Notes: a model not told the origin generated them from the letters alone. Counted from the stretch's first letter, positions 8,372 through 38,522 are shown. The stretch is DNA of 64,000 nt from Lepidodermella squamata (GCA_047495785.1 JBLDXI010000001.1:4030001-4094000); one strand, 5' to 3'. Translations and numbers: made by a program.

Positions 8372-9695
8372 ATGATCCTGTTTTTGACAGCAATTTTCTT
8401 CGGCCAGGCTTGTGCAGATTTGCCAGAAGACATTTCACTCTTGCTGTATCCTGACCTGCAGAATGTGTACTACGATAAACATCCTACAAGTGAGCCATTG
8501 TATGACTCAACTTTTCAATTCAATGAAATTTGAATCTCCGCAGTATATACAAACTATCAGAACCATTGCAGATTGACGAATTACACAATTATGGACGATG
8601 AAAACTACTTCATTTATGGCAGTTTGCCAAAATCTGCCATTGCCTTATCCCTCTCTTACACAGCAAAGTGTTTTATTCAAATAACAGCCAGGGAAGATCT
8701 GATTTTACGACTTCAGCTTTCAATGGCTTCGTCGGGTCTTTGCAGATCAACCAGCGTCTCCCGGAGGTGGTCAGCTCCTGACCAAGTGATGCTCAGGGCA
8801 TGGAGTGGTTTGATAGAGGAAGCGTATCTGGAAACATCCTATGGCGACCTTAATTTGGTTAGTCACCCTATTTCAATCCATTCTAGGTAATTTCTTTCTT
8901 CTAAAGATAATGCAAGCTCCTTCGTCGAAGTTGGGCAACTATTGCGCATCCATGGACGTGAAATCTGCAGTAAACTCGGTTACAATTCTAGCTGAATTTA
9001 CGGGCGATTTTTCACCCAAAAGCGATTTCAACTTCACACTTCAAGTGACAACCCTCGACAAATCGTCTGTTTCTTACGCATCCGACTCTGGATCGCTTAC
9101 GTCAACGCAAGCTATCATTCTCTACGTTCTGCTCGCCATCGGGGCCTTTTTCCTTCTCGTCATAGTAGCATTCCGCATTTTCTTCTATCCACGCAACGGA
9201 GTTCCTTTCAAACAGTTCTGCCTACGTCACAAAATCTGCGGTTGCTGCGTTGGAGAAATTCAAAGCCAACCTGCAGCTAATGTAACGAGACGACGTCAGC
9301 GGCGCATTTTGAATGATGTCGCGAGTTTGGATCAAGTTGCTGCTATCGTTTCCTCCGGGCACTTTTCAACTCACACGAATGTTTTCCTTCACCAAGAATT
9401 GCAACGAGCAGCTGTTTACTGTAAGCAAATAAAAACGTGTTTTCTAGTTTAAAATTTTCTCTATTCAGATACTAACGTAAAATCGCAAAGGCTTATGCCG
9501 TTAATGGAGATGAAAAGTGTGGACTCGATGAAGTCGTTGCGTGGTTGCGAGATCCCATCAGCGAGCGCCCGTGGTCCTAGGATCCTTTCCATGGGGCTCT
9601 CGGCTGAAAGCGAGGAGCTAATCGAACCGAAAATGCCGGCATATCCAATCAACAATGCTGTCAACACGGCAACGCAACATATTATTTCAAGATGA
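8372..9695 (+). CDS. Family member A: type I membrane protein with divergent CUB-like ectodomain
   Basis: Signal MILFLTAIFFGQACA; phase-1 intron, then IYTNYQNHC..ENYFIYGSLP..C..FNFTLQV; TM AIILYVLLAIGAFFLLVIVAF; Cys cluster ICGCC; introns near 8490-8543, 8858-8907, 9421-9468. The 3' end is less certain. Confidence 0.75.
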
Positions 9696-11050
9696 TTCAT
9701 ATAACACAATTTCGTGTTCTGTGACACCCGTTTTGTTGCCTTGTTGTGTTTTTAAGATAAAATTCAAACTTCTGACTTTCCGACCGGCGTCACGCGACTC
9801 GATAGCTGTATGAATCAGATACCTGCCGGAAGCGCAGCACTCAAGAGTGCTTCTACGGAGAACGAATTCGATGCGAAACCTTTTCTCGGACGAATTTTCT
9901 GCGAGAAAAATTGACTTCTGCGAATGGCGTCGCCTGTCGAGCGCATGGTTGAGCATTTGTTCTACAGCGTGATGGTCGGGCTACCGAATTCGAGGAAGGC
10001 AATCTATTACCGCTACATATTGCGCCAGCTTCACATAAGCACGCCGTCTGATGACCAGCAAACATCAAGCAACAGTGATGAAAATCGGAGGGTTGTGCTG
10101 AATGTTGAGCAGGTCGTGCTGGAATTTCTTATATCAGACGACGGGCTTGTTACGAATCTTTCAGCGCAACGCGAATCATGATTCGGTTGTGTTCCGATTT
10201 CGTTTTGATTGTCGTGACTTTTACGATATTTGACTCAATAAATAATTATCGAACCCGGTGATTTTCCGCCTCTTATTTAGTGATGATATCAACTATCAAC
10301 CATATCAAGGCTTACAACGCTGATCTGAATCTAAATCCATCTACAGTGATGATTTTTTAGGTTAATTTTTGTTTCAGTATGTATTCATGTTGATGACGAT
10401 CAGTGGGATCTCCAGCCTAATATGACTTACTAATTAGCAAACCCAACAAAGAAAATGGAGTACGAATCCCAATATTTTTGGTATTTTAATTTTGTCGAAG
10501 GAACCTCGGATATTGGAATCCTTTATGTTTGGTTGGTTAAGCCTTGGTTACGCAGTGGAAGGCTTGAGGTGAAAATTGAGGGGAACATCGAAAACCTCTC
10601 GAGGGTGCCCTAAATTTGCAGAATTGCATAACAGCATCACATCTGAACCTAAACTGAACCTAATTTCTCCCTTTTACTTTGAACAACGATGGCTCGCTAA
10701 CGGTGAGGAATTAGCTTATGAGATTTTGTGAGCTTACTGCGAAATAGGTTTTGACCATTGATGGTCAAAATATATGAGCCCGGAGAACCTCATGGCTATG
10801 GAATGACAGTGTTTGAAAAAAGTCGACTTTGACTTTAGACTCTTTGAAGTTGACTGTGATGCAATTTTACGCATATTTCGTCGCGTTGCGTTTGAAGGGG
10901 CCGCTCTCGAAATGATCTATCCAAAATGATCAGCTAAGCGAGAGCCATAAGAGAGAGATACCGATTTATTGGTGGTCTGCGTTACATAATTCTTAGTAAC
11001 ATTGCCTTTAAGACACAGAGATATGAATTAATTAACTTCAGTATACTTGT

Positions 11051-11190
11051 ATGGTATGACATGAGTAAAACGTTTATATCTGTACGGAGCCACCCGAGAT
11101 TTACGAGTCGGAACGAGCCGGAGGCGAGTTGCGATGAGTAAATCGAGTGCGGCGAGTTCAGATATGAACGATTTACGAATGTTATACCGT
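11051..11190. repeat. 140-nt imperfect palindrome with five tandem GA/GA mismatches and a c(GGA)g loop
   Basis: Arms atggtatgacat-GA-gtaaaacgtttatatctg ... cagatatgaacgatttac-GA-atgttataccgt; centre aac-GA-gcc-GGA-ggc-GA-gtt. Confidence 0.8.
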
Positions 11191-13258: not shown

Positions 13259-15714
13259 TTAAAAAATTAAAATTTCATAAATTAAAAAAATTTTAATTTC
13301 GAAATTACTGGACTAAAATTTAATTCATATGCACATTCCAATATGCACAGTCCGCGGCCTTCGAGGGGCCCATGTAACGGGAGCTTCGAAGCCGCGGCGT
13401 CCTATAGTACGTCTCATGTCCTCAGTGACATTATATCCCTGGCCGCGCAATTCGCTCGCTATTTTCTGGCGAATTTTGTTATGTCTCGAAGTGATTAGCA
13501 ACGAGTTGTAGGGGCAGGCGCCAAGGACGTGAGCAAGAGATTCAATCTCAGCGCCGCATCGACGACACTGGTTTCCGTCCTGACTGACACCTGGTACCCC
13601 TCTAACCGGAGCCGTGTTTGTAGACATTTTGATCGCCATGGTCCATTCAGCAACGCTTAGCCCATTTCTCCGAAAAACCCAATTGTTTGTTTTGGGCACG
13701 CATTTGAACTGGGCAACTCCTCTCCCTTTTTGATCCAAGCTGCACCATGTTTCAAATTCTCGCAGTCGAAGAATGCGACGTATAATCTCAGCATTCGGAG
13801 GAAGAATTTTCTCCGGGTCGAATCGATCATCGTTTTCCATTTCCTCATCCAGATTCTGATCAAGCTCATCATTGTTAAGGTCAACATCAAGTTTCGCTAG
13901 ACATTCTTCCATTTCCTTCTCAAGGTTTCTGCAGGCCAGTACCAGGGGTTCGCCGTTAACTAACAATTTTCTACAAATATTATATATTTGAAGATAAGCT
14001 TCCCAAGTAGCTTTCGGAAGGCCAAGACCACGATGTTTACGAGCAGCATAGAAGAAGCTAGTGGGCGTGCTTGTAGGCAAACCGACGCATTCTTTAACGA
14101 CGCTACGCATAATGACGTCAACGGATTCCAAAAATGTTTTCCTGATCGCTTTAATTGGCGCCGTTTGAAACGGATAAATAAGCTTTGGCCAGATGAACTG
14201 AGTCAAAATAGTCAGTTTTTGGTCTGCTAGTAATAGGTTCGAATTTGCTAGCAGTTCTAGTTGTTCCTTCAGTTCAGAGATGACGGCTGCTTCGTCAAAC
14301 ACAATTTCATCATGGAAGGTGACGCCAAGATACTTGATCGTTTCATCGTTTTTGATTGCCGGAATGGAATCTCCGTTGCTTAAAATCAAAGGATCGCAGG
14401 ATAAAACACCATTTCCCACGATAATCGCTGCGCATTTCTTTACGTTAACTTCCAAGCCTATTTGAGAGAAGAGGTTTCGAGCCATTTCGACGAGTGTTGC
14501 AGCGGAATCACGACTTTTTCCGACTGGGGTTGTGTCGTCTGCAAAGCCGAGCACTGAAACGTTTGCTAGTTCTGATGAAAGCTTAAAACCATAGGCATCA
14601 GCTACTTCTTTTTCTGACAATTCACGAAGGACAAAATCGATACAAAAAGGTTGAAGATGGTTGGTGAGATTGGTGAGCCTTGCATAACTCCTCTTTGAAA
14701 TGAGATTTTAGAAGTTTTGTGACCATTTGCCTCGATCTGAGTGGAATTATGATTAATTAGCTCCAGAATCATTTCACGCAGGTTGCTTGGTATCGGTAAT
14801 GTTTCCAGAGTGCGCTGAATGTGCTCAAAGCCAATGTTGTCAAAGGCTTTTGCCAGATCCAGAAAGGTTACAACGCATGTAGACTTTTCTGCCTTCGCTT
14901 TTCTTAGACAACCGGAAACAATCGACGAGTTTATATGTGTACCGGCGCATGATGTAAATCCACGCTGGTTAGACGAAAAACTTACGTATTCTCGTAGTCG
15001 TCGATCAAGCATTCGTTCGAAAACCCTTCGAACAAGTGAGGTTATCGTAATTGGACGCCAGTTGTTTGGGTCACCCAAATCTCCAGATTTGTCGATCAAC
15101 ACTGTTCTTGCTAATTTGAGGCTCCTCGGAAGCATTTTCCTTTTCAGCATGGAGTTGTATATGAGGACAAGAACGTCAATGCAGCCTTCCGCATGAAGTA
15201 CTCTCATTAGTGTTCTGTCTGGTCCAGGAGATGTATCAAGTGCTATCCCGGCCGCGGCGGCTTTTACTTCGTCAGCGCTTGTTTCGGATTCGAAAGTAGA
15301 GTCAATTTTTGTTTGTTCGTCTACTGTCATCGCATTGTCGTTCAATAAAAACGGCAGTTTATTTGCCGATTCCCATTGGGTTCAGCGGTTTTCGAAAGTA
15401 ATAATAGAAATACTGTCAGTTGGTTGTGATTGATAATATTAAAGAAACACCATTTGAATAAAATCAAAGTTTGAATGATCACGGAAGTAATCACGTTTAT
15501 ACCACCTACATAATTCGATAGATCATCTCCAGAGGAGCATAACGATGTAAATTTTGGGTCATATTTGGTTTCCTTAATATATTGCAGTAACAATGAAAAC
15601 TTAGCAGCCCCTTTCAAACGCAACGCGACGATTTAGGTAACCTCACCCAAAATTGCTGTCGAGGATATCAGTGGCCATTCGTGAATCAATGGCCAAGTGC
15701 TAAATGCTGCCTTG

Positions 15715-16830: not shown

Positions 16831-16939
16831 ACACCGTTGCTGGCTTACTGGAGGCTATGCTAAACACATGTCACTGCATTTCGATGTCCTTGGGCAAGAT
16901 TGCAGCTTTCTCGTTTTTTGTTATTTCGCAGCGTAAAAA

Positions 16940-19494: not shown

Positions 19495-20453
19495 ATGACT
19501 TCGAACCAATGGACCCTCCAAGGCAAGACAGCGATAGTCACCGGGGCAAATACCGGTATTGGCAAATACATCGCCCTGGAACTGGCACAGCAAGGAGCTC
19601 GGGTTATCTTGGCCTGCCGAAATCCTGCGGCGGCTGACGATGCTGCGGATGAGATAAGACGTGAGCTGGGGATGAGCGAAGAAGTTGGCGAGAAAATGGT
19701 GACCTGGCGCCAGGTTGACCTATCGAATCTGGAGTCAATCCGAAAATTTGCTGGAGAGATCAACTCGAGCTTAGACGAACTTCATGTTTTGGTCAACAAT
19801 GCCGGGCTTCTTCCCCCAGATGAGAAAACCCCGACCCTGGACGGCCGTTTCGAGTTGACATTCGCCACGAACCATCTCGGCCCATTCCTTCTAACGCAGC
19901 TTCTGCTGCCTCTTCTGAAAAAATCTGCACCGAGCCGGATTATCAACGTCTCATCGGTCGGATACAAGATGTGTAACAAGGTCGGAGGTTACAATATTGA
20001 AGACCCGCAATACGACGATCATCCGGAGAATTACGAACCTTGGCTGGCCTATTGCCAGACAAAGTTGGCAAACATTTTGACAACGCGTCAGCTGAAAAAG
20101 AGGCTGGAAGAAACTGGTGTGTCGGTTTTCAGCGTTCATCCAGGCATGGTTAAAACCGATATTTTCCGCCACAGATCGATGAAATTTTCACTATTTTGCG
20201 GACCTGTGGTCTTCATGTTTGGTCGCACCCCGCAAAAGGGCGCGAAACCTGTTGTTTACTGCTGCTCCGAGCCTGGAATTGAGGATATGAGCGGGGAATA
20301 TTTTGTGTAAGATTTGTTTCTTCTTTCTGAACTTTAAACTTTAGCTTTGACTTTTTCAGTGACAACAAGGTTGAAGCTCTTGAGCCCATTGCCAAAGATG
20401 ACGAAATAGGCGAGCGCCTGTGGCAGCTGAGCGAGAAGCTCATCTCAGAGTGA
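19495..20453 (+). CDS. Short-chain dehydrogenase/reductase, retinol dehydrogenase 12/13/14-like (copy 1)
   Basis: TGANTGIG, NNAG, TNHLGPFLLT, YCQTK, VHPG. One intron at 20307-20359; TATA-like TTATAAAA at ~19432. Confidence 0.93.
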
Positions 20454-20914: not shown

Positions 20915-22573
20915 ATGCTTCGCGCCTGGGTGCTTGCAGCTTTCAGCTTATCGCTAGCAATAGCCCAGGGCAATATCGCCTCATTAGAAACGGCCACCAC
21001 AACTGTCAGAATTCCGCTAAGCAATGCTACAACATTAGGGAGAATAACCTCGACTTCCAATTCATCAAATGTTACGGATTCTCGAACGAATGTTACGAAC
21101 ATAATTGCTTCAACGACATTAGCCCCGACTACAAGTAGGTCAACAACAACCACAACTACCCCTTTGATCGTGACAGACCTGAGACGTGAGTTGCGTTTTG
21201 AGATGAAAAATCGGATCTTAACTAGCTGAATTTCAGTAAATGGGTCAAACGATTTCAGCTGCGGGGGGACAGTAATTACGCCTCGAGAGTACTTTATCAA
21301 TCAAACCGATCGCTATGTAATCAGAACAAGGTCCCTGCAAACTGTGGCTATCGGAGCTCCAGGACAGTGGTCAAACTCTTCAGCTTTGACTTGTGTAGCA
21401 GCTATCGTAGCACCGCCGAACTTTCAACTCAGTGTCGATTTCCTGGATAATCTTTGTACAAGAGAGGGTGTACCAGCTTCCGGTTCTTGGCGGGATGGAA
21501 GTGGCTTGCAAGTATGGGATGGCTTCAATTTCGATCAAAGGCCAACTGCAAACGGATCTTATCTCAGGCCCCGAGCTGTTTCTCAAATTGTAAGCTTTGA
21601 TAATTCAGCTAAATGCTGATTTTCTTATTGATTTTTATAGCTGTCAATTCCTGCTCCTAGCTCGAGGATTTGCGCAGCAGAAAGTATTTCTTCGACCACG
21701 AATGTTGTGTCTATAATAGTGAAGCAGCCTCCGAATTATCTCTTCATCGCTGGGTCGAATAATGAAACCTCAAGCTCCCAGACTATAGTTTACGATTTTT
21801 CCCTGGTCATAACAGCGTCGAGGAAGCCATTTGTTACAGAGTTGGTTTCGAATGATAGTACCAACAACTTAGTCTATCTGTCTCTCTTATCTTTGATTGT
21901 GGTGCTAGTTATCATCATAATTTTAGTCAGAATCTTCTGCTGTGATACTGACTGTCCCTGTTTACTCCCGTCTCCCGAAGCAGCAGGGCGGAGTAGTTGT
22001 AAAAATTCTTGCATGGGTTGCTGCTACATTTTTTGCAACTGCTGCAAGCGAAGGGAACGCCGCGAGCCGTACAATATGTCAAACAGTGATACTTATGTAA
22101 CAGAGGCTGTCCACTCCTCAGTACAATCATCAGCTCAAACCTTCAATTCTGACATACCGATGACGAATATTCAGCAGAAATCAAACGGTAACTCTCATGC
22201 CAGGCAGCAAAAGTACCAGGCAGACACGGGAAATAGTTCGCCGCAATACTCCAATATCCGTCCTGCTGGCCAGTCGAAATATGCCGCGGCTGTTCCGCCG
22301 TCTAACTTTGTTTCTACGAATCCTCATGGACCAACACATACCACAGCGACTCAGCCAGCTGGCTTCACAGATCTCGGAGGCGGGGCTGCAGGATATGGCT
22401 ACGAGGAAGAGGAGGATGAAGAGGAGGAAATGGATCAAAACGGGGGAGGGATGTACGGCGGTGGGCATTTCGATCTGCGAAATGCGAACCCTAACAATCC
22501 TTTCCACGGCATGGCGCCGCAGTCGCAGCAAAATGTCCGTGGCCAGCCGAGTTTTCAAACTTACTACGGCTGA
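20915..22573 (+). CDS. Family member B: signal peptide, Thr/Ser mucin-like stalk, CUB-like domain, TM, Cys-rich and NPF-containing tail
   Basis: MLRAWVLAAFSLSLAIA; TCVAAIVAPPNFQLSVDF; LQVWDG; LSIP..C..STTNVVSI; YDFSLVI; TM LVYLSLLSLIVVLVIIIILV; CCDTDCPC, CMGCCYIFCNCC. Confidence 0.8.
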
Positions 22574-22772
22574 GTATCGCAATAATCTCAATAATATCTA
22601 GCCGGTTTTGTTTTTTGTGTTAAATTCTATCGTTAAGAATAAAGCGTTGGCGTGAGTCTATCCACTTTCGATTTTTTTCGCGCAAACGTTTGAATAATTG
22701 ATGAACAAAAAGCGTCATTAGAACGTAGGGTGGCTGCATTCGAACGAAGCCTAGTGTCATTCTTTTCATAAA

Positions 22773-23934: not shown

Positions 23935-24088
23935 ACATTGTTTTTTTTATGAATTCCGTAAATAAATCCAGTATGATTCATGGGAAATTTTTTATAATCG
24001 AATTTTATTAATAATTTACTATGGGGAAGTACGATGAATGTATTTATGCAAGGCTACAGCGCATCCTTTTATAGGCAAAACTAAAAAA

Positions 24089-25230
24089 ATGCTGCTGGTG
24101 ACATGTTTTATAACAATAGCCGTTAAGCATGTCGCTTCCGACACTGTTTTTTGGCTCTATCCGCGGTCGTTTTTCAATACTTGGGACAAGTATAGCTACC
24201 ATACCGCGCAGGGTCTCCCGAATCAAACGGGTTAGTTGTTGATGTCCAATGACCAAAAATGGCTACATTTTAAATCTTTTTTCGTTTAGTTTACCTTAAT
24301 TTCTTGAAACACTGCACCAGTCCAACCTTAAATGCCTCGTCATTTTCCATAAATTTCGACGAGACGTACAACATAGTTGGCAGCGTGCCACAGATGAGCT
24401 TCAACTCGCCTTTTGTCAACGGGGATACCGGAAGTTTGCTGCCAGAATATTTTGCACAGAACTGCTCCATTGCAATTTTCGGGCCGGAAAATGCACTTTT
24501 GCGGGTGAAAATTGTCAAAGATACTGCTGATTGCTCTTTCTGGGGACAAGGCTGCCAAGTCGTGCTGTCAAATCTAGGTAACCCAATCGTAGCTCTTCCT
24601 TCGACCACCACAGCCTGCGGACGGAATGAACTGAGCTATACAACGACTAGCAGTTACCTATCAATCAACTCTACATCATGCTTCTCGACTCCCTCGGCAG
24701 ACTTTAATTTTTCAATTGTTGTAACGGTAGTGGATGATGATGGTGATGGCAGCAATGCAATCGGCCCGATTGTTGCTGGGGTGCTTAGCGCGATTGGCGG
24801 GATCACACTGTTGATTATTAGGTCAATTTCATGTTGCAATGACTCTAACTGCACATGTGTGCTAGGCGTGTGCTGTATTTGTTTTATTCGAATTGCTAAT
24901 TCCTGCGGCTGTACTACGGCAGATCGGTGTTGCTGTTGCAAAAGACGCTCGGCTAATGTAGCCCCATCACTTGTTATCATCCCGCCCACTGCGAGGGATG
25001 ATCCGACGAATGCACCTGCCCCGGCTTATGAGGATGATGATGATTCGAAATCAGTGGATTCGGCTGTTGAATCACCACCACCGCCTTATATAACTGCAAT
25101 GCAGGAATCAGGTCTTCACCGTCCGAATTCCTCGGCTCGACCCCAGTCAAATGGAGCTCAGATACCTGATTTGTATCCTCCACTAACTAGAGAAGAAACT
25201 AACGCTATCAATAGATCCTCTAAAGTTTAA
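24089..25230 (+). CDS. Family member D (close paralogue of C)
   Basis: MLLVTCFITIAVKHVAS..WLYPRSF; VYLNFLKHC; CSFWGQGC; IIPPTARDD shared with C; PPPPY; LYPPL. Confidence 0.85.
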
Positions 25231-25428
25231 AAGACGCCCATTTTTCGAATAAATGTATTTTCTATTTGTCATTTCTCTGACTTGAATTATTGATTTATCG
25301 TTTAATGCGTAGTGGTAACAATAGATATTTGTTGCTAAGCAACAATAGATCTGTACGCAAACACGGCGACATGTTGATCCAGCGGCCAATGAACCCACCA
25401 CTTGGAATGCAGAATGCTCTGCGAAAGC

Positions 25429-26582
25429 ATGGCTGATGCGAGAACAGTTTTAATAGTCCTAGTATTGCAACTGGGCCAAGTTGAATGTGGCTCCAATGTC
25501 GCGATTTACCCAAGGTCATTTAGCTTCTCATCGGACCAATTTTACACTGGTCCGGGTTTCGCTGCTTTGAAATCACTCCCGAGTATCTCTTCCAGCGGCT
25601 ATCAGATCTCGGGAGCTTTGATTGATCAAAAAGGTGGGGTTGCCTTATTCTCAATTTAAAATCTTTCTAAGTCGTTTTAAATTCAGTTTATGGAAACTTC
25701 TACTATCATTGCTCGGGCTATCCTCTTTACACGCAGAACTACAACGAGAGATACATAGTCTATGGAAGTGTTCCGATGATGGCTGATGGCCGTGGACCTT
25801 TCGTCGACACTAGTGGAAATGTTCTAACGAGCTACCTCGCAGATGTGTGTCAATTTTCAATAACAGCTCCAGATGGGAATGTACAACAGGTGGCATTCAG
25901 CGATTCTCAATGCAGCCAATGGCCAGTTGGCTGCTCGATTAGCGTCTACGAAGGTTCCATTTTTAACAAAGCCGCGTTTTCATACACTCAAACGAAAGAC
26001 GGGAGTCTAACGAGCTGTAGTAACAGTTTCTACACAACCTCGAACATGGTCGCGGTTAGCATTGTTCAATGCAACCCGAATCCGAGTCAAAACTTCAATT
26101 TCACGATGACGGTTACCCCGGCGAAGAAGAATGATGAAGTTCCAATCGCGTACATAGCTATTGGAGTCGTTGTTGGAGTTGTTGTAATTGCTATAATTGT
26201 TACTATTATCTGTTGTTGCTGTTGTGCTAAGACTTGTTGTTGTTGTTTCGTAAATTTGTGTACCTGTTGCTTTTGTCAGAAGACTACGACTGTTACTACT
26301 CAAAACCAACCGATTTCGCCTTCGAAACCAGCAGCAAATGTTGCAGTTGTCTCCAAAAATACCGCTAAAGACAGCGTAACTCCAGGCATCTATCCAAAAC
26401 TTGACTCTCCGCCCCCTCATGCTCCTCCTGCTCCTTCTGTAATATCTCATCAAAATATAAATGAAACCCAGAAACCTTCTTCTGATCAAGGTGTGACACC
26501 TACTGATGATGAAATTTACTCGAAAAGTAACGTAGATAATCCTCAACCTTTGTACCCCGTGCTTAACCAGCCGGCCAAATGA
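25429..26582 (+). CDS. Family member E
   Basis: Signal peptide, IYPRSF, intron, VYGNFYYHC..ERYIVYGSVP; CSQWPVGC; CNPNPSQNFNFT; TM followed by CCCCC/CCCC; IYPKL, LYPVLNQPAK*. Confidence 0.85.
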
Positions 26583-26821
26583 ATAAAAAGTGAAGCCTCT
26601 GGACTCATATCGATTTTTTGAATTAGTAATGACCGCATCCATGAGTTTGCTACCAAGGAATAAAAAAACAAGCAAACGTTTATTGATCATAACAGATCCC
26701 ACCTGCATATCGTTCTATCGATCGCACCATTGTTCGACTGCAAACAACATCATCCCATCGCTAGATTTTTAGAACGAAACGAGCCTGTATTATCAAGGTT
26801 TTTATTCCTTACAAAAATCCC

Positions 26822-28290
26822 ATGTTAGGGTGTCAAAGTTTTATTCTCCTCATTTGGCTGAATTCAGCAAATGCTGCGAGGGTATACATAGGTTACTCAC
26901 CGAGAGTCTATGCCTTGTCATCGTATTCCTCGTACTATTACTACTCCGGTTACTCGCCGTATTCCAGCGTTTATTTGGGGATATCATCCTCAAGCAGTTC
27001 TTCTAGTGGCTATCAAACTGCGAGCAGCTTTGATGATCAAAGAGGTGAGTTTCATTCAAATAGTGTGGTTCCAACTAAATCGTCTTGGTTTTGATAGTCT
27101 ATAGTAACTTCATCTACCACTGCAATGCAACGCCGTCCTTTCAGCAGAACTACAACGAGCGATACTTCATTCATGGAAGTGTGCCTATGACTTACGACGG
27201 CTCGTCCCCATTTGTAGACACAAATGGGATACCTTTGACAAACTATTTGACCGACTACTGCCAATTCACCCTTGCTGCACCTACAGGATACGTACATAAG
27301 ATGACATTCAGCGATGACAATTGTAAACAATGGTCTAGCGGCTGCACGTTGACTGTTTATGAGGATTCATTCGGGGGGAAAACTATTCTAGACCTGCCAT
27401 CTCTCAGTTCAAGCTGCTCTAGTCGATCCTTATACACTAGTTCTAATGTAGTTGCAGTTAAAGTTACTCAATGCAATCCGAATCCGAGCCAATACTTCAA
27501 TTTCACCTTAACATTCGTGCCTGCGAAATGGGTGAGTAGCAGCAGCAGTATTTCAGGGGTGGTTTACATCTCAATTGGCGCTGTTGCTCTGGTGTTCGTC
27601 GGACTATTCTTTTTGTTCCGATGGTGCTGCAGGCAGCCGCGGTACTATCAAAGGATTGCATGTTACTGCTGCTGTATGAGACCCCCTGTCACCCAGGTGA
27701 CACCTCGGCAACAAGTTTTCGCAACTCAATCGTCAGCCTATCCACCGCCTCATATCCAGACTCAAATCATCATTCAGCCGAACGGGGAAATTGCAAGGTG
27801 CGAGAGAGATGCTTATGGCAACGTGATTCAAGTTACGGGTATCAACCAGCCGCCGCCTTACCCAACTGGGCCTAATAAAATGGCGGTTGCCATGCCAACA
27901 CCACCCCCTCCTTACCAGCCGCAACCGCCAGCTGATGTTAGATTGTTGAGAGCAGAGCTGTCAGTTTCCGAGACTTCTTCAGTAGCATCCAATGAAGCCT
28001 TACAACCAGCGGGCCCTGGTATTGCCTCGCACCCAGTATCAGCAGCGGTACCAAGCGTGGATCCAACAATTTATACTGCTGGCTCAACAGCTAAGATCGC
28101 TCCAGGCAGGCCGGGTACGCTACAGCCCAGAACTACTCCGACCGTCCAAAGTGCAGGCATTGTCCAAGGTCAAACTTCTGTGAATAATGGACCCTCGGAA
28201 AACCCTGGAGATCCGAACCCTGGAGACATATACGGTTCAACAGGGGATGCCCAGCCCCTGCATGCTGTGATGAATCAACCAGCTAAATGA
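26822..28290 (+). CDS. Family member F (close paralogue of E)
   Basis: MLGCQSFILLIWLNSANA; VYSNFIYHC..ERYFIHGSVP; CKQWSSGC; CNPNPSQYFNFT; TM; CYCCC; two PPPY; ends NQPAK*. Confidence 0.85.
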
Positions 28291-28845
28291 ACAGGAAATA
28301 ATAGATATGTCAGTGTTTTTGGCTCTTCAAAAGTGTGACATGATTAAGCTGAGATATTGTCATGAGTCATGAGATAATTTACTAATAAAATCACGACTGA
28401 AAAGTAGAATGCAAAGCTAGCAGTGAGGCCTGCTCGTGGGAGCCGAGGCGTGGTAATTTGAAACCGTTAGACAAAGTTTCTGGAATGCAGTGTCACAAAA
28501 AAATAATTAAGTACATGTTCAAAAAATTTTCCGATAACATATCGCAGTCATATTTCGCCAAATGTTCTCGCAGTACGCGGAAAGGCATTTTTTCTCACGT
28601 ATTTTGCATCTGACGACGTGTGAGGCTTCCTAGGGTCTTGAATTAAGACATGGGCCTTTTTATCACCCCAGGAGGAATTCGCTTAAAAGCTTAGCTGAAA
28701 GCTTCCGCTTCCGCTCGAACTCGCAACTTGGGACCGACCTGCCGCTATAAAATCAACGCAGAATCACGGCGAAAGCATCATTCAAGCAGACATATATTCT
28801 TACATTCAAAATCTTTACACGCCTCAACTAACGCTCGGCATCACC

Positions 28846-29061
28846 ATGAACGCACGCGTCGAACTACTCCTGTACAAAGTGATGACTGCTTCATGCTCGA
28901 AATCGACTCAAAGCGATGCGAAACCGAAACCTGTTCGAAGCCAATCTTGCGAACATCGGCCTGCAATCATGTCTCACATCACCCACACTATCAAACAGGC
29001 GGTGCGGGGTGATGGAGCGAAACTTCTTTTGGAGCCGGCCCTGAGCGCACCAAACCTTTAA
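28846..29061 (+). CDS. Putative 71-aa orphan small protein
   Basis: TATAAAA at 28746, Inr-like CATCATT ~30 bp downstream, CACC-ATG context, AATAAA at ~29092. Confidence 0.5.
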   Translation: MNARVELLLYKVMTASCSKSTQSDAKPKPVRSQSCEHRPAIMSHITHTIKQAVRGDGAKLLLEPALSAPNL

Positions 29062-29238
29062 ATAATTGTTATCTCAAGATTGTTATCAATCAATAAATAT
29101 GTATCTCTGCATAATTTCTAGTCTTTTGATCACGTAATTTGGGTGCATCTTACAATGATGCGTAAATAATTTATTGCGAAAAGGGATATTTAGTCCATCT
29201 TAATTTGCAGGCTCTAGTCTTTGTGCAGACCAATAGTT

Positions 29239-30276
29239 ATGAACTCTCGCGTAGCTTCAATTGTTTTGGTGCGAATTTTTGGCTTTAACGTGGTTTTTGG
29301 CCACTTGGGGCTGTGGATCTATCCCAGATCGTTTTTTAGCGGAACGCAACAGAAGTCCTCGGAGGCGAAACCTCCATCGTTTTCAGGTCGGCAAAATGTC
29401 CACTGTTTCAACGTTAATATACAAACTGAATCGATTTTTCAAGTTTACTCAAATTTCATACACCATTGCATAGCTGAGGCGTATGCTATCGACTTCAACG
29501 AAACTTATTACATTTACGGTTAGTTTTTCCCTCGATTTGCGCCACTTACGTCATAGGTCATGTGATTTGCGTCATGATTTCCAGGAAGTGTACCCGAAAC
29601 AGACGTATTTTCGCCTTACACGAGCAAAACAAAGCCTTACTACACGGAGTCACGTTTCTTGTCCCCAAACTGCTCGTTCACGATCCTGGGCCCTGAGCGC
29701 GGAATATTGTCCCTTCAGGTTGAAGTGATGCAAATGAGGCCGAAACCTGCTATCACTTCAAGAATCAATACGAAGTGCTACAAACACGAGTTCTGGTTTC
29801 ATTTTCATGGCCCAGCTGCAGTGGATGGGTTGACAGAACGAGTTATGAGCTCGTCAACACTGGCCTATGGTGGAACTTTCAGCGCGAAGACACACTCCAA
29901 TCTTGTCGCTTTTCACTCGCAAAATAACCTGAAATGTCGGCGAAATTTCACGATCAGGCTTACGGTGGAAAGACGTCCTCAAGTTGAAGTTACTGCTCAA
30001 ACCCGAAATATATTTTGGCCATTATTCGGAATAGGCGCTGCTGCTGTTACTGTAGGTATCCTGGTATTTTTTTACTGTTTTATGAGAAGGAAAATGTTGC
30101 CGCGGCAAGCCAAAACTCAGCAACCTCCGACGTCGATCGGACAACTCGAAAATCTTGAAATGCTGCTGAAATTGTATAATCAAGGCGAGTTGGGGGCGAT
30201 TTCGAACTGCGATATGAATGAATATAGCGAAAAATGCCCCAGACACGAGGTAGAGATTCACGGTGCAACTCTGTGA
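29239..30276 (+). CDS. Family member G
   Basis: WIYPRSF; VYSNFIHHC..ETYYIYG|SVP; CSFTILGP; SNLVAF; NFTIRLTV; TM IFWPLFGIGAAAVTVGILVFFYCF. Confidence 0.8.
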
Positions 30277-30482
30277 GTGTGAGAAATTTGTAAAACTTTT
30301 GAAGTAAACAACGTGAAATGTGCTGATCTGAAGCATTTACGACTACCATTAGCTAGTCCAGCCATAGCAACAGAGAGCTACGATAGCAACGATGGAGAGT
30401 TCACGCTGCACTTTGGTGGGAGAACGACATACGAACCTGGCAAAATTTAATATCAAATGAAAGTGCCATTCGAAAATCCGAA

Positions 30483-32080
30483 ATGAAAATTATCTTAACC
30501 CCAATACTGCAATTATTTTTCTTGATCTATTCTTGCCATGCACAGAAGGGTACCACGACCACCCTCAGTGATAAGGATGCTCTCTTGGAGCAGCTTCGGA
30601 TCATGGATGATATGCTGAACGAGTATGGCCACTATCCAATCGATATCAAAGATCGCAGGCCTTTGACGCCGAGATCAAATATGTATATTAACAATGTAAC
30701 AAGTGAGCTACTCACCTCATAGAAGATATACGTTGGGTATTTATATCTTACCTTTGCCTCTCAGTGTTTGGTAACTATCATGGTCATTGCTACAATCCGA
30801 AGCCTTACTTCACAGAAAACGAAAAAGATTCTTATACCATTTATGGCAAGTTTTTAATGAATTTCTCGCAAGTCGCTGTTAATGATAAAATGATAAAATA
30901 GGAAGTCTTCCTTCATCTGAGCGGAAGTATTCAATCTCTTCAAATACGCCATGTCACATTCAAATTTCGGCCCGAAAATTGAAAAACAACGACCCGGCAA
31001 ATGCAATGACTTTCAAGATTGCTTTCTCAATGGCTCTGTCTAGCTTGTGTTCAGCCTTGGGAATTCCCCAGGATCCGGAAGCCTTTGGTTTCAGGTTACA
31101 GGTCTTGGATGGCGATGTATCCCTGGATGATGCTACTAATGGCCTTAAAAACTCATCCATTGTAAGTTTCATTATGACGCCGATCATGCAAATAGCTCAG
31201 GAACTCTTCGCCTCAGCTTTTGGACCTTCCGAGCAAAAATTCAGATCCCTGCGCGTCAGCCATGGTTACGTCGACGAAAAACGTAATTACGATAATAGCG
31301 ACGTATAACATCGATACAATTGACCTCGACACCAATTACTCTTTGGTTATTCAAACAACCGTGCCTACGTCATCGACAGTTCAGAATGATGCAAAAGGGG
31401 CGCAATTTACCGCTTTGTGGGTCTGTATTGCCGTAATTTGCGTGGCTGCGATAGTCGCAGCTATCTTTTTCGTCTATCGAAAAATGAACAAAAAACGCTT
31501 AAGATCGAGCATCCTGCCGGTCTATCAAAAGAGGAGAAGCACTAATCCTCAGATAAGGATTACAGATGCTCAACTGCATGGACACCCTGTAACCCCAGGA
31601 TGTACGCATTTCCGGAAAAATCGAAAATGTCAATATTTTCTGTTTTAAAAACAGATCACTTTGAGGAAAAAGCTACTCAAATAGACCCGATCAGAACCCC
31701 TAGCCACGAGGAATTTAGATCGGTAAGTTTTAGTTCCTTACGACGCCCAGATCTCGTTCACCTTGTTTTTCTGCTGTTAGAGGAGAGCGTCGGTTGTCTC
31801 AGTGGGTGCCTTTAGTCAGCACGGCGGTATCGATCCTGTACCAACTCCACTACCCAACAGGCGAGTCTCAATTGTTTCTCTTTGTCCAGAAGTTCATTCT
31901 TTTATGCATGATTTTGATGACGCCTCACGTCGCTACAGCCCGCCCAACTCAGACCTCTCAGTTAGTCAAATTTCAGCCCAGCCTGGCTCCGCCCGACTCT
32001 CGCTGCCCCTTGCTACGACTGGAACAGCTCCGCCTGGCAGCAGACGGCATTCGTCTAATCTTGTTAATGGTCTTGAATGA
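30483..32080 (+). CDS. Family member H
   Basis: MKIILTPILQLFFLIYSCHA; VFGNYHGHC..DSYTIYG|SLP; CHIQISA; LQVLDG; intron 31162-31216 gives LLDLP..C..STKNVITI; TM ALWVCIAVICVAAIVAAIFFVY. Last exon ends NGLE*. Confidence 0.75.
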
Positions 32081-32441
32081 GAGGATACCCTCGAGTAACC
32101 TTGATTTCGTGGGATTTTCCTGCGACGCAGAGAGCTGCAGGCAGCTTTTAGCGAACATTTTGTCGCGTTTAGTGAGTGGTGATGAGTGATCATTAATAAA
32201 TTAGCGAATCGCTTATCCGGCGTCGATTTGTTGATGAAAAAAAACTAAGTTGCGTGGTAACCACGCGCATCCACTAGGAATTGTCACAATTTGGCTGAGG
32301 ATTCCCTTCAACCTGTTTTGCGGTGGAATAAAAAAAAACAAGTAGTAGCTTCAAAGCATCAACATGTTTGCTTGCTTTGCTGGACGCGGGCAATATAAGG
32401 GACGGCGAGCGATAAACAATCACAACAACAAGAAAGCTGGG

Positions 32442-33988
32442 ATGGAAATTAGCATCGCAATTTCCACCTGGCTCCTTGGTCTATTCGTCCTAACCGAGGG
32501 CGCAAGTATACCTCTCAATCTCAATGACCTCCCGAGTGATGACACCGCGATCTCTTTGTCCCTCTCAAACGATACTGACAGCAAAATCGCTATTTTTGGT
32601 AATTTTACTAATAGTTAACGAGGTAGAGATAAAATTGTGTTTCTTAGGCCCTCTCGTGAATAGAGACGATTCTTTTGAAATCAACATAGCAATCGCTGCT
32701 CCGGATGGATATTTGATACGGACGGTGTTTTCCAGTCGATTTTACTCATGCTACCGAGGTCGAAAGCCTACAAGTTGGCCAGCTGGTTGGACGATGACAA
32801 TTCACGACGAAAATCCATCGACCAGCGCATTGGTAAGGCTCTAAATCTTCTTAAACCCTGTTAAATAGTCCTTATTTCTGTCTCCAGCTTTCACTGCCCT
32901 ATGGAGCAACTTATCTAACCACGGGAAGTGCTTGTTTCGTAGCAGGAGCGATTTCGAGCTCGAACTACGCCACGGTTATCTTCCGATTCTCAGTAGACCC
33001 TTCGGCGAGCATTCTACAGACAGACAACAACTTCACCCTACTTTTAACCCCTGTTCTAAAGTCACAAGTTGACTGCTCGCTATGGGAAACAGCGTCAAAC
33101 AGCGTTTGCTCTGGCAAAAATGACGGAGGTTCCGTTTCTATGAACGTTGTCTACATCGTTGGGGCATTTATAGCCGTCATAGTTGCTGGGGTGATCGCTC
33201 TAATCGGAAGGGCAGCTTGTAAGCACTACGAGAAAATGCGGAATAGAAGACTGTCAAGTCATATCATTGATGCGAACGGTAATCTGGGAGATATCACAGC
33301 TGGGGAAATGAGCAGTCGACGAGTCCAGCGGAAGATCAAGCAAATTTTGATGCAGCCTGTTCCGTCACTAGCCGCTCTTGTCCAGCGACACTCTGAGGTT
33401 GCAGCTGTTACGGAAATGTGGCGCAAGGAGCATCATGGCAGGGAACATCGAAGAAATAGCCAAGTTCAAGGCACGAGTCAACTTCAGCCGCCATCTCAGC
33501 GCCGCCACGAGCCGTTAGGGAACAGACTTTCCACCCTTAGTACGTCAAGCCACGCTCCACTGATGCGGAACCACTCGAATAATCTAGCGGCAACCTTGAA
33601 TGCTCCCCTGGACCACAATCCAGACCCAGATCTTGGTAGGATTCTTGGATGAAAACCTTAATGTTTATTGATTTTCCTCCACGCAGAGGGTGATACAATG
33701 ACAGGATTCCCAAAGAAAGGAAGCAAGGGTATGGCAGAGACTGACTTCACTTATCCAAATGATGGTATTGTAAGTTTTGATTTGTTTACATTAGGGCGTA
33801 GTTGATTTTGATGTTCTATTTAGGAAATCGTTATAGGTCCTATACAACCAGCGTATTGTGCCCCCGATTTGACAACTGCAAGGCATGAGGTCTACAACGG
33901 CCAAGGACCATCCGCTCCCATTGACCCGTTATCGACTGTTGACGACCCTAAATCGCCGGTTCATCCGTGCGCAGTCGCTCAGATGTAG
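32442..33988 (+). CDS. Family member I
   Basis: MEISIAISTWLLGLFVLTEG; IAAPDGYLIR; SWPAGW; LSLP; SSSNYATV; NNFTLLLTP; TM VVYIVGAFIAVIVAGVIALIG. Two further exons end ..GPSAPIDP..VHPCAVAQM*. Confidence 0.75.
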
Positions 33989-34369
33989 TCAACAAGTTGA
34001 CTTATTCATTCGCCCCTTTTATTTTTTGTTAACACCCTAATCATCGCCTATTCACGTTATTTTTACATACAACACATGCTTTTGAATATTTTATTGTAAG
34101 ATGTGATTCAAGATGTTGTTGTTTGTGGACAATAAAAACTACGAGTGGTGAAGTAAAAAATGCATAGTAAACGCCGAGTGAGTGAATGGCGCGCGTGATT
34201 GGGCCGCTGCCAGCAACACGCAAAACAAAGAGCGCTGCTATTTCCAACCTATTGTTAGCAGGGGCGGAAAGCGACGCACGCAATTTTTGCGTTAATGTCA
34301 CCTTACCGCGAGGAAAAAATTACTCGCTATCAAAATCTTGGCATTTGGCCTTAAATTTTCACGAAAGAC

Positions 34370-35740
34370 ATGTCAAAATTAAGAATTCTACACCTGTTCA
34401 TTCTCGTCGTGGCACAATGCTCCTCGCAAGACACTTCGGTCTTTGAAAAGCTCAACTACGGCATTGATGACCCGCTGCCGAGTGTTGCGCCCCAGAAAAG
34501 ACACAGCCCTGCTCAATTTAATCAATATCAGGATGAGTTATCAAGAGGTAATGCGTTCTGTTTATTTCTTTAGAATAACTTCACCGTTTTTTGTTCCTAT
34601 AGTTTACGCAAATTACTTCGAGCATTGTTACGGCAGTCCGAGCTACTTTCTTGAGCAGAACCAGCGCTTCGTGATTCATGGTTAAAATAGCTATTTAAAT
34701 TTAGCATAAATTCAATGTCTCAATTTTTGCAGGAAGTGTGCCCTCGATCGAGGCAGGAAATTCAACAGGAAATAGCAGTGAAACCACAGCCAGTAACTCT
34801 CAATGGACTTCTTACTTCTACCTTTCGCCAGTCTGCTTGTTCACAATCACCGGGCCCAAAAATCAATTTCTGCAATTGAAATTTGATGATCCAACCAATA
34901 TTAACTGCAAATCATGGCCACCTGGTTGTTCAGTAACCGTGTGGAATGGGAATTACAAAACTGACCCGAAAAATTCGCCAATACTGCTAACTCTACCAGC
35001 AACTGCTCCGGATTCAAACTCAACAGATGAAGACACTAGGCCTACAGGTTGCTCATTTGAAGCATTTTCCAATACAAATGTACTGACAGTGAGAGTTGAT
35101 TCTTGTCTGCCGACTCCAAGTCGCGAATTCAACTTCACGGCTGTGATAGCTCCATTGAAATCAAAGGCTCTTCAAGTTGGTCTAGGGGATGAAGTTACAA
35201 CCAACTTCACCATGTTTTACACCGTGACTTTTGTCGTAGCTTTCGCTATTGCAGTTGGCTTCTTGATTCTGCGCATGTTGAAGCCACCGAAACGTCTGAA
35301 AGCGTTGAAAAATCGATTCTTCTGCTGCTGTCTGCCAATATCGATTCTGCCGCGGGGCGGAAGTGCTAATTACGTAACGCCCGCTCCAGTCAACAGCTAC
35401 ATGCTACAATTAAAAACTAATTGCGATGATTCATCGAATACCAGCTCCCCACTGCCGTCACGCTGCGGCGCCTACGGCGGGGTCGATTCATCAGGAACAA
35501 GCAATGCCAGTGACACAGCTCGTACGGTAACCACGATTGCCCCAGATAGTTGCCGGCAATCCAGTTAGTCAATTATTCATTTCAGTGAAAACTATAAATA
35601 GTTACATTTCAGGAATGAATAAGGTACACCCCCAATCGGAGCGACCGCCTCTCATCAAATCGCTGTCCGCCCAATCAAGAGATGACGACATTTCTTTGCC
35701 TGGTTTTCCCTCAAACGAACACATTTCATGTCCAGTATAA
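34370..35740 (+). CDS. Family member J
   Basis: MSKLRILHLFILVVAQCSS; VYANYFEHC..QRFVIHG|SVP; CLFTITGP; CKSWPPGCSVTVWNG; LLTLP; CLPTPSREFNFT; TM; FFCCC. Confidence 0.82.
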
Positions 35741-37320
35741 ATTCGCCCGAAACTCTATTTATAAGGAGTTGATATTGAATAAAATTTGCCGTGTCTCTCG
35801 GTAAATTGGTATATGTTGTTGTTTAACTCAATCTCAAATTCAAATATCAACTGAACCCCAAATGTTGGCATCTTAAAATCGAAGGTCACGACTTTCATCG
35901 TTGACTTTCAAAACAAATTATGCATATTTTCCTTTTCGTACACTACAATTTTTTGAAAAGTGGCAGTTTTGCTGATCACCAGGAAGCAAGTCAGGAATTA
36001 GGAACGTCATCGAAAGGTTCAAGTTCCTTCGTCAAATTTCATTTGATTCCCGGTTATAATGGCAGTTATATCTGGAAGCAACAGCGCGAGATCCCCCTGC
36101 TTAAATTTTTTCTAAACTTTAATGAACTTTGCTGAAATCGGATAGCAGCTTTTGAAAATAGTCAAATGTTGATCGAAAATCATTTCGCTGAGTTTCAGCT
36201 TGCGATTGTGGGACATGTCGAACTTAAGCGAAAGACGAACGATCAAAATACTTAAATCCTCCCATAAATAATAATATTTTGCTACATTTGTGGGGGTCAC
36301 GCGACTTCGATTTTAGCTGAATTTGTATTTTTCTGCATAAAATTACTAGGTATGAGAGAGAATTAGGTAGAATAATTGGCTCACATTTCTAATAAACCCT
36401 CTCCTGTCCGTCTAATTAGTTATAGCCTCAATTTTGGAGCAAACCCTGTCCTGTCCGTCAGGATCCCGGATCGTCCATTAGGCAAGTAAAGCAGTTGCCC
36501 TATCAAAATGTTGACACCGCAGATAACAAACCACAGGGGGGCCCTCAAATTCAAGGGCCCGCGCGGGCTCCATCTCCTGCAATTGTCTTATAGGATCATT
36601 CCATTCAATTATCCTAGTTCATGCATGGCAATGGACGACTCAATTTTTTGCTCTCGGATAAAACTCTGCTAATAGTAACCCTATTTTTTTCGTAGTGGCT
36701 CGCCCCATTTCTTTCCACTTAAAATGCAGTGTATTATCGACCGGAGGACCTCATCAAACAGTTCGCAATACATGCTTATCGATTGCGAAATCAAGCCTCG
36801 CTTAATTAATAGCTCGTTATGCCATCTGATTGACAACCCTCAGCTATAATCGAACCGGGCGTGTTTTTGCAAAGAGGAATAACGGATGCGCGATTTGTTT
36901 ACACAAATCCAATAGGCATACCTGCGGCCGATCTAAAAAGCCCGTCAAATTTAACACGGCGCTTTCGCTTAAATCGATATCGCCGACTGCGAATACGAAT
37001 GACGGATTTACTGAACGGGCCATGCGTCATGGCGCGACTGGCATACATGCATTACGGCAAGCCTCTGAGGCCTTGCCTCGCAAATCAAACAGGAAACGAA
37101 TTGCACCCCATATCGATTGCCGACAACCCGCGGCAAGCAACGCAGTTATTATTGCCGTTTTTTATTAATTTACTCAGCACTGTGTAGGTATGCTGCGTTT
37201 TTTCCTATACCTTTCATACTTTCTACAGCTAACATTTCAGCCCATGGCTGAAAGGAGTGGCGTTCTAAAAATTTTCCTTTTTAATCATAGGCTATTTACG
37301 AAAGAATAAATGAGAGTTTA

Positions 37321-38522
37321 ATGGAAATATTATTCAACGCATTAGTCTTGTTATCGGTCGCCATTTACGAGGGCCAAGTTAATGGTCTGGCGATTGCGCC
37401 TCTTCTGAACAGAGGAATAGCGAAGCCAAACAATCGAGGCGGATCGAATAGCTACAACTACCGACCAGTATCTGGCAGTAGGTCGGGAGGTTCCAGCTAT
37501 GCAGGAGTATCCTACAACTCCATAGTTGTTGTAGGAAAACCCAGCGCAATCTACGGAAGTGTCAGAGTTGTTAAACCAGTTACAACAAACGTAAGACCTG
37601 TCGATCTCGAGGAGCCTTATTATCTGTACGGCGATGATGACGATGACGACAATAGCACTGTCGCCAATGCCACAAACGCAGCTAACGCTACAGGCCTATT
37701 GAGAATGGGCTCAGTCTCAAATGTCACGGTTGTGAGCAACATCACTAGCTTGGCATCAATATTTCCGGCGGTCAATGGTTCGGCGAATAGTTCCAACACT
37801 ACAGCTTGGAAGATCTACGCGAATTACTTCAAGCAATGCGTCGATCCTCAGGGTTACGGCTTGAGCCAAGATGAGACTTATCAAGTCTACGGTGAGTTGC
37901 GATCTTATATGGATGAGCATTTTGAAAGCATTCAAAATTTTCAGCTCTTGCTCCTCCTGCGCCTGACGGAACATCCTATGCAAACTTCTCCTTCTTAGCT
38001 GTACCGGACGATGACAACAGTAATACGACTGAGTTGGCTTTAATCCGCGTATTCACCGATGCTTGCTTCTTCACGATAACTAATCAAAATGAGAGCGGTA
38101 GGCTGAAAGTAACCGTTAAAACAGCTGTTGGTCCAGGTGAGGACTGCGCTGCGCGAAAGGTCGAAAATTATCAATGGCCGTCGGGTTGCGTGCTCAACAT
38201 TTACCAGGGCAACACAAACAGCGATTGGACAATGGCTAGGTCAGCGCTGCAGATCAACTCGAACGGCGCGCTGACGTGTGAGCGAAGTTTTATCACCGAT
38301 CAAAACGCTGTCGGTTTTGAAATGAAGTGGTGTCTTGAGCACCAGGAGGAGATTAGCGACCGCCTTAACTACACAATACTAATCGAGCCTGTTGCCCCGG
38401 CCCCCGTTACAACTACAGCCGTTATCAACCGAACTGAAATCGCGAGGCCTGCTGCAAGCCGAGCGCATATTGGAGAGATCTCTTCTACTTTCTTATTATT
38501 CACTATTTTGATACTCTACTAA
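37321..38522 (+). CDS. Family member K, ending in a GPI-like hydrophobic tail with no cytoplasmic domain
   Basis: MEILFNALVLLSVAIYEG; IYANYFKQC..ETYQVYG; CFFTITN; WPSGCVLNIYQG; LNYTILIEP; tail ISSTFLLFTILILY*. Confidence 0.78.

Follow-up and report, generated by a model that had tools for sequence, protein, structure and literature searches.

A tandem family of eleven genes was identified in Lepidodermella squamata (GCA_047495785.1), within a 64,000-nucleotide stretch (JBLDXI010000001.1:4030001-4094000) that is hereafter called the window and whose own positions are used throughout. The genes, designated A to K, all lie on the + strand, with gene A at 8372-9452 and genes B-K at 20915-38522, and the explanation that best accounts for our results overall, which we hold with high confidence, is that they constitute a tandem family of surface glycoproteins bearing a divergent CUB domain. 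The encoded proteins share a layout in which a signal peptide is followed by a short N-terminal segment with the motif YPR, one CUB domain of ~150 residues, a short stalk and then an anchor. The ectodomain is a divergent branch of CUB, and neither an undescribed domain nor a new kind of system. An earlier reading of the same DNA (hereafter, the original prediction) had described a lineage-specific, fast-diverging receptor array with a CUB-like ectodomain, possibly an undescribed domain family, and had suggested for it a role in immune, allorecognition or environmental sensing. Here, we present the gene models, the comparative analyses of the ectodomain and the evolutionary evidence that bear on these proposals.

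Results

Eleven tandem genes constitute one family

The window is eukaryotic, with introns of ~50-60 nt, and gene models were built from stop-to-stop frames followed by a search for the minimal GT..AG chain between fixed start and stop codons. A family hidden Markov model (HMM) run over the six frames of the whole 64 kb returned these eleven matches only, with no other on either strand, and the same members were obtained by tblastn with six ectodomains, the MAFFT alignment of the spliced ectodomains and the HMM scan. In leave-one-out HMM searches all eleven members scored 33.6-148 bits, as compared with at most 12.6 bits for the best of 500 self-shuffles; the weakest were I (33.6 bits) and B (42.6 bits), and A, G and H scored 69.0, 62.9 and 53.5 bits, respectively. 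Genes A-K are one family. The gene models and the six-frame scan thus agree with the original prediction on the number, strand and location of the genes, and the MAFFT alignment and leave-one-out searches agree with it on a point that was essential to it, namely that the ectodomains align as a single family; the motif string that it gave, running from YPR to FNFT, is likewise seen in the spliced alignment.

Intron positions are common to several members. A phase-1 intron precedes the V/I-Y-x-N-F/Y motif in eight genes (A, C, D, E, F, G, H and J), and another phase-1 intron falls inside the IYG-SVP motif, after IYG, in five (G, H, I, J and K); both sites had been anticipated, and to these our analysis adds a third common position, a phase-0 intron that precedes LL.LP in four genes (A, B, H and I). 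The intron of gene H at the conserved IYG-S site (30846-30901) has a predicted GC donor (GCAAGT) instead of GT. In a relative, represented by the scaffold L001 described below, the C/D-like gene (L001:3403-4566) and the K orthologue (L001:10001-11161) are single open reading frames (ORFs) from which the introns of the window genes are absent.

Evidence from RNA was provided by Logan contigs of RNA run X1, in whose loose ends SMART complementary DNA adaptor sequence is found. Four introns are backed by these contigs: in D and E a contig joins the two exons, and in C and F loose ends match the upstream exon. RNA depth covers genes C-F and drops almost to zero in the spacers C/D and D/E. Genes C-F are transcribed and spliced. 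Within gene C, one contig of run X2 skips 136 nt at 23414-23551, a segment that encodes the stalk and membrane span; its ends are TA..AA and it is not an intron. A loose end of run X1 behind 23414 carries 27 nt that are not present in the window. The difference at 23414-23551 may correspond to an alternative allele in which a segment has been replaced or deleted.

The ectodomain as a divergent CUB domain

The ectodomain of gene F (window 27100-27540) was modelled with AlphaFold2 using the family alignment A1, which yielded an all-beta structure with a predicted local distance difference test (pLDDT) score of 81.6 and a predicted template modelling (pTM) score of 0.77. In Foldseek searches with this model, CUB domains ranked first in PDB, AFDB Swiss-Prot and AFDB clusters (E 1e-5 to 4e-7); the PDB matches included C1r CUB2, neuropilins, PCPE-1 and spermadhesins (E ~1e-5), and the best match among the AFDB clusters reached E 3.8e-7. 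With VIA-align, 78 chains were found at Z of at least 8, and the best 50 listed were all CUB structures (Z 9.1-13.0), the top match being the spermadhesin PSP-II (1spp_B; Z 13.0, root-mean-square deviation 2.2 Å, 111/112 residues). The sequence identity of the model to CUB structures is 10-17%. According to the fold superposition, the N-terminal part with the motif VY.NF..HC...Y.I.GS.P corresponds to the first CUB strands. ESM features also pointed to CUB clusters, at 0.94.

Comparison of profiles gave a similar picture. Alignment A1 matched one canonical CUB (P0008:355-475) in hhalign at 94.7% (E 6e-8), and the eleven spliced window sequences matched 29 canonical CUBs at 97.1% (E 7e-11) over 84 columns, while the reversed-sequence control gave 0.3% (E 0.22); the region of profile-profile similarity begins with the C.W.I.AP.G strand and ends with the last one. 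Further, an exhaustive search of 1.84 billion representative proteins with the family HMM returned 15 matches at E<=1e-3, including six family members and at least six multi-CUB proteins (P0006-P0009, P0012 and P0013; E 5e-7 to 2e-4), in five of which a CUB domain contains most or all of the best-matching stretch. P0004 and P0010, two HYR_4C repeat proteins also present among the matches, were set aside as probable repeat or compositional matches. A word-indexed search with the F ectodomain in 5.8 billion proteins, a collection apparently without the window's own proteins, gave no match.

On the predicted fold and the profile comparisons, we interpret the ectodomain as a true, highly divergent CUB domain, homologous to canonical CUB. 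The CUB likeness noticed in the original prediction is raised to homology by these two lines of comparison, both of which it had proposed: the AlphaFold and Foldseek comparison places CUB first, and the wider HMM search retrieves canonical CUB proteins together with only six relatives other than canonical CUB proteins among 1.84 billion, which shows the family to be rare. The suggestion of an undescribed domain family is abandoned in favour of a divergent CUB branch, in view of the fold, hhalign and HMM results.

Cysteine pairs and the calcium site

The ectodomains of C, D, E, F, J and K contain six cysteines, those of A, B and H contain four, as does that of G, with one cysteine displaced, and that of I contains two. 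In nine of the eleven members four cysteines are found at the positions expected for the two disulfides of canonical CUB, C1-C2 and C3-C4, with C2 aligning with the cysteine of the CUB C.W.I motif. The pair added in the six-cysteine members comprises Cys4 (GC.L.V) and Cys6 (C..P..FNFT); in a set of 17 complete sequences, drawn from the window and the relatives, both are present in ten, neither in seven, and one alone in none, a co-variation that we read as the signature of a bonded pair.

In CUB domains of the C1s/MASP type, the Asp of yDy and that of SD are the two aspartate ligands of Ca2+. In both profile alignments the first of these residues, the Asp of yDy, coincides with Cys4 and the second, that of F.SD, with Cys6; members without these cysteines have other residues there. 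The full ligand pattern of the Ca2+-binding CUBs (E...yDy...SD, as in C1r/C1s/MASP/cubilin) does not occur in the family alignments, and the absence of the canonical YDY and F.SD motifs, already perceived in the original prediction, is therefore upheld by the profile alignments. In the six-cysteine members, a disulfide probably replaces the Ca2+ site, as judged from the alignment. An N-glycosylation sequon (N-F/Y-T/S) is found on the last strand of 10 of the 11 window members, gene B having DFS there.

Membrane anchors and tails

A hydrophobic segment resembling a signal peptide is found at the N-terminus of each of the eleven proteins. A single strong hydrophobic span follows the domain in A-J, and none is found in K, which has no 19-residue span at threshold. 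Behind the span, a Cys-rich stretch is present in A-F and J, reaching 13 cysteines in ~40 residues directly after the span in E. The CUB domain of gene B is the most canonical-looking of the set. Gene G, which is among the divergent members, may be degenerate or may carry an unmodelled intron.

Five of the tails, those of B, C, D, E and F, contain PPxY, YPxL or NPF motifs (Table 1). A single span combined with a cytoplasmic PPxY or LPxY is a property of part of the family only, namely C, D, F and H, and is found in none of A, B, E, G, I and J. The PPxY motif also occurs in C/D-like genes of relatives, as PPLY and PPTY in L001:3403-4566 and as PPAY in P0005. The ORF of gene K ends in ...AASRAHIGEISSTFLLFTILILY followed by a stop, which leaves a hydrophobic end of 14-15 residues and no cytoplasmic part; a search for an exon continuing this ORF found none, and the K orthologue P0002 has the same layout and ends alike. 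From these features, the product of gene K looks glycosylphosphatidylinositol (GPI)-anchored.

Relatives, divergence and selection

Members of the family were found elsewhere in ENA metagenome assemblies, in one Logan contig and, in the case of one fragment, in a Tara Oceans assembly as well. The scaffold L001 (24 kb, ENA ERZ23486787) is collinear with the window at 34-54 kb and displays the gene order C/D-like, E/F-like, I-like, J, K, SDR, DIM1, GMP synthase, MRP-L46 and UCH, the conserved order from J to UCH spanning 8.7-19.2 kb of the scaffold. Between the window and L001, the family orthologues are ~24-44% identical (gene J ~36%, to the L001 gene at 8875-9672), as compared with 53-93% for the flanking proteins; thus, the family diverges faster than its neighbours, and the fast divergence that had been proposed for it is substantiated. 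Sequences of the window and of the relatives are intermingled in a maximum-likelihood tree, with support of 98/99 for K and K-like and of 97/91 for I and I-like, and these supported cross-species pairs indicate that the subfamilies predate the split. Likely orthologues of J and of E/F are also present on L001. For the flanking GMP synthase, the only close match is that of the metagenome relative (73% identity), the enzymes of named animals from many phyla all being 49-55% identical; the source is thus an animal that has no close annotated relative in the collection searched. The relative harbours further members at two loci, a tandem pair on L002 (6245-6715 and 7579-8076) and one on L004 (8810-9130), the latter K-like with a Gly/Ser/Tyr/His-rich N-terminal tract.

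The pairs C/D and E/F are 52-54% identical and nearer to each other than to the L001 genes. For these closest paralogues, the proportion of non-synonymous differences (pN) is ~0.32 and that of synonymous differences (pS) ~0.8; since the synonymous sites are saturated, the ratio of non-synonymous to synonymous substitution rates (dN/dS) is not computable and pN and pS are given in its place. Saturated pS, together with the orthologues in the syntenic scaffold, indicates that the array is not young.

Within C-F, 38 coding variants were listed, 23 synonymous and 15 non-synonymous. Clusters of differences at 25832-25975 in gene E and 27327-27385 in gene F have roughly half the depth in both sequencing runs, a pattern such as a second haplotype or a near copy would give; the block in gene E, the densest, comprises 11 synonymous changes and 2 non-synonymous ones in one codon. 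The variant pattern is that of purifying, not diversifying, selection.

Genomic surroundings and feature coordinates

Two paralogues of SDR on the + strand bracket genes B-K, at 19495-20310 and ~39059-39859, and are 67% and 69% identical to the single SDR that follows the K orthologue in L001. The possibility that gene A and the first SDR are a duplicate of K and the second SDR was unsupported, as A groups with H, on long branches, and not with K. Between A and B, on the - strand at 13325-15345, two ORFs of 431 and 247 aa appeared by eye similar to a non-long-terminal-repeat (non-LTR) reverse transcriptase. The coordinates of the family genes, their introns and the flanking genes are compiled in Table 1.

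Table 1. Family genes A-K and flanking genes of the window, with protein features, motifs of the cytoplasmic tail, introns and the basis of each intron model.
Feature	Position	Strand	Protein features	Tail motifs	Introns	Basis of introns
Gene A	8372-9452	+	Signal peptide, four-Cys CUB-like domain, membrane span, 94-aa tail with CC pair	No PPxY, YPxL, NPF or LPxY	8490-8543, 8858-8906 (predicted)	Splice consensus and family alignment
Gene B	20915-22573	+	Signal peptide, Ser/Thr-rich stalk, CUB with SCGG start and four Cys; after the CUB, membrane span, Cys-rich juxtamembrane stretch, long tail	NPF	21186-21236, 21590-21640 (predicted)	Splice consensus and family alignment
Gene C	22773-23934	+	Six-Cys CUB-like domain, membrane span, CCCC	PPxY (PPPY), YPxL (YPQL)	22915-22975	RNA loose end matching exon 1
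Gene D	24089-25230	+	Paralogue of C (~52% core identity)	PPxY (PPPY), YPxL (YPPL)	24231-24289	RNA contig joins exons across 59-nt GT..AG
Gene E	25429-26582	+	Six-Cys CUB-like domain, membrane span	YPxL, two copies (YPKL, YPVL)	25634-25686	RNA contig joins exons across 53-nt GT..AG
Gene F	26822-28290	+	Tyr/Ser-rich N-terminal tract, six-Cys CUB-like domain, membrane span	PPxY (two PPPY)	27045-27097	RNA loose ends matching both intron sides
Gene G	29239-30276	+	Divergent; without W..GC.L.V..G strand motif; short tail	No PPxY, YPxL, NPF or LPxY	29387-29443, 29519-29584 (predicted)	Splice consensus and family alignment
Gene H	30483-31648	+	Four-Cys member; 3' end uncertain	LPxY (LPVY)	30703-30764, 30846-30901 (GC-AG), 31162-31216 (predicted)	Splice consensus and family alignment
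Gene I	32442-33652	+	Without N-terminal Cys pair (I.AAPDGY..., two Cys); membrane span, 148-aa tail	No PPxY, YPxL, NPF or LPxY	32599-32647, 32833-32887 (predicted)	Splice consensus and family alignment
Gene J	34370-35568	+	Six-Cys member; CCC after membrane span	No PPxY, YPxL, NPF or LPxY	34548-34602, 34681-34732 (predicted)	Splice consensus and family alignment
Gene K	37321-38522	+	Signal peptide, Gly/Ser/Tyr-rich low-complexity region, N-glycan-rich stretch, six-Cys CUB-like domain		37892-37944 (predicted)	Splice consensus and family alignment
DIM1	41.5-42.0 kb	-
GMP synthase	42.7-46.4 kb	-
MRP-L46	~48.3-48.7 kb	-
UCH	51.8-53.9 kb	-

Discussion

In common with the CUB superfamily (PF00431; spermadhesins, C1r/C1s/MASP, neuropilins, PCPE-1 and TSG-6), the proteins described here have a jelly-roll fold, cysteines at the canonical positions and an extracellular location. 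They differ from it by ~30-40 extra loop residues, by a last strand that reads FNFT, with its N-glycan sequon, where the canonical one reads GF.a.y, by a conserved YPR segment upstream, and by the positions of the two Ca2+-ligand Asp residues, which are either a co-varying Cys pair or lost.

The layout and the tails suggest, by analogy, how such proteins may act. The CUB ectodomain would bind an extracellular ligand or, in cis, a neighbouring membrane protein; the juxtamembrane Cys clusters would be palmitoylated; the PPxY, YPxL and NPF motifs would recruit Nedd4-family ubiquitin ligases, ALIX and EH-domain proteins; and the protein, together with its bound cargo, would be endocytosed and then sorted. 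The members would thus be transmembrane adaptors or receptors in the manner of LRP10/LRAD3 or of Shisa-like PPxY adaptors. As a whole, this mechanism of adaptor function and endocytic sorting is a tentative proposal, to which we give somewhat less than an even chance. The array itself arose through old duplications kept under purifying selection.

Two groups of known proteins serve as models for it. Pei and Grishin reportedly proposed in 2012 that single-pass PPxY proteins, namely Shisa-like, WBP1, VOPP1 and CYYR1, bring Nedd4-type ligases to receptors; these resemble the window proteins in being single-pass, with a Cys-containing ectodomain and a disordered tail bearing PPxY, whereas their ectodomains are small, Cys-knot-like and not CUB, and there is no sequence relation. 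The type I single-pass layout with a proline-rich PPxY tail, seen in part of the family, is also that of LRP3, LRP10, LRP12 and LRAD3, of which the first three also contain CUB in their ectodomains. LRP10, itself type I with CUB in its ectodomain and PPxY in its tail, lowers surface IL7R, and the PPxY motifs of LRAD3 activate Itch/Nedd4 (PMC11315911). In contrast to LRP3/10/12, the window family has no LDLa (Pfam scans gave no Ldl_recept_a match), one CUB only and a juxtamembrane poly-Cys stretch, and the two are likened by layout, not by orthology.

Several observations weigh against the interpretation of the array as divergent-CUB adaptors. Regarding the genes, the models of A, B and G-K come from splice consensus and family alignment only. 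Regarding the domain, Pfam scans of window ORFs and exons gave no match to a CUB-type model (PF00431, CUB_2 and others) even at E<=10, and otherwise chance-level matches only, and a profile search of PDB sequences gave nothing significant; CUB homology therefore rests on profile-profile and fold evidence. A second AlphaFold2 model, of the relative's full intronless ectodomain, reached a pLDDT of 62.3 and again led to CUB in Foldseek, weakly, its N-terminus and YPR segment being unreliable. Disulfide connectivity and the loss of Ca2+ binding are inferred from the alignment. The proposed trafficking is deduced from short linear motifs, and disordered tails rich in proline acquire such motifs easily; no sorting motif is present in A, G, I and J, H carries LPVY only and K has no tail, and no P(T/S)AP motif occurs in the eleven gene models.

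Among the alternatives, we considered an auxiliary-subunit role, in which the proteins would accompany ion channels or receptors as NETO1/2, SOL-1 and LEV-10 do, with the CUB domain contacting the channel in cis. The CUBs of NETO2 in GluK2 complexes are among the structural matches, and the single-pass layout with a CUB ectodomain is shared with these proteins, in which that ectodomain contacts a partner membrane protein. Nevertheless, the structural match is to CUBs generally, with spermadhesins on top; NETO1/2, SOL-1 and LEV-10 have at least two CUBs and/or LDLa and orthologues conserved across animals, while the window proteins have neither LDLa nor a second CUB; and no channel gene adjoins the array, nor does anything tie the window genes to channels. 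This function is unlikely.

The array could also be a repertoire for recognition of pathogens or of self and non-self, with ectodomains diversified for foreign or allogeneic ligands. A tandem array of eleven paralogues would fit this role, as would the low identity of the orthologous ectodomains relative to the flanking genes and the location of the half-depth variant blocks in the ectodomains of E and F, and there is a precedent in the C. elegans CUB-like genes, which number 50-60 and are clustered and infection-induced (PMC1635533). The window genes resemble these genes (CUB_2, PF02408, formerly DUF141) in having a divergent CUB-related domain and in being clustered and lineage-restricted, but the nematode proteins are described as secreted and infection-induced, whereas the window proteins are membrane-anchored and give no PF02408 match. 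Moreover, the listed variants are mainly synonymous, as are those of the E block, the paralogues are old, as their saturated pS indicates, and within the conserved synteny orthologues are supported for I and K and likely for J and E/F. We regard such a repertoire as improbable, and the immune, allorecognition or sensing role put forward in the original prediction obtains no support from the polymorphism check. A wider version, in which the array and its sister loci in marine relatives would form a lineage-restricted repertoire of fast-evolving single-CUB proteins that, with the Ca2+ site swapped for a disulfide, would capture foreign or environmental ligands and couple them to uptake by ubiquitin and the endosomal sorting complex required for transport (ESCRT) through the PPxY/YPxL tails, seems to us just as doubtful; if true, it would be a CUB-based counterpart of scavenger and pattern-recognition receptors.

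Even less probable is a function as structural components of the surface or matrix, in which the N-terminal Tyr/Ser/Gly-rich tracts would serve for cross-linking or adhesion, with the CUB domain as no more than a scaffold: Tyr/Ser-rich tracts do occur in F, K and the relatives P0002 and P0022, and K is GPI-like, yet most members have no such tracts, in ten of the eleven a membrane span is followed by a cytoplasmic tail, which bears sorting motifs in five. Finally, an ectodomain of a new fold unrelated to CUB, with a likeness due to convergence or chance, could explain the absence of Pfam and PDB sequence matches and the low identity to CUB structures, but is highly improbable, being already contradicted by the Z score of 13.0 over the whole CUB domain, the hhalign E value of 7e-11 against 0.22 for the reversed control, the retrieval by the profile of canonical CUB proteins, mostly inside CUB boundaries, and the agreement of Cys positions with the canonical pairs.

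The reading of the array as a tandem family of divergent-CUB surface glycoproteins implies that a whole CUB branch can escape the standard domain models; the 11 genes found here, and at least 8 in a relative, would be annotated without a known domain. With its two-, four- and six-cysteine members, both membrane-spanning and of GPI type, the family constitutes a natural series for the role of the Ca2+ site in CUB stability and ligand binding. Furthermore, in an animal lineage that has received little study, it offers candidates for membrane adaptors of Nedd4-type ubiquitin ligases.

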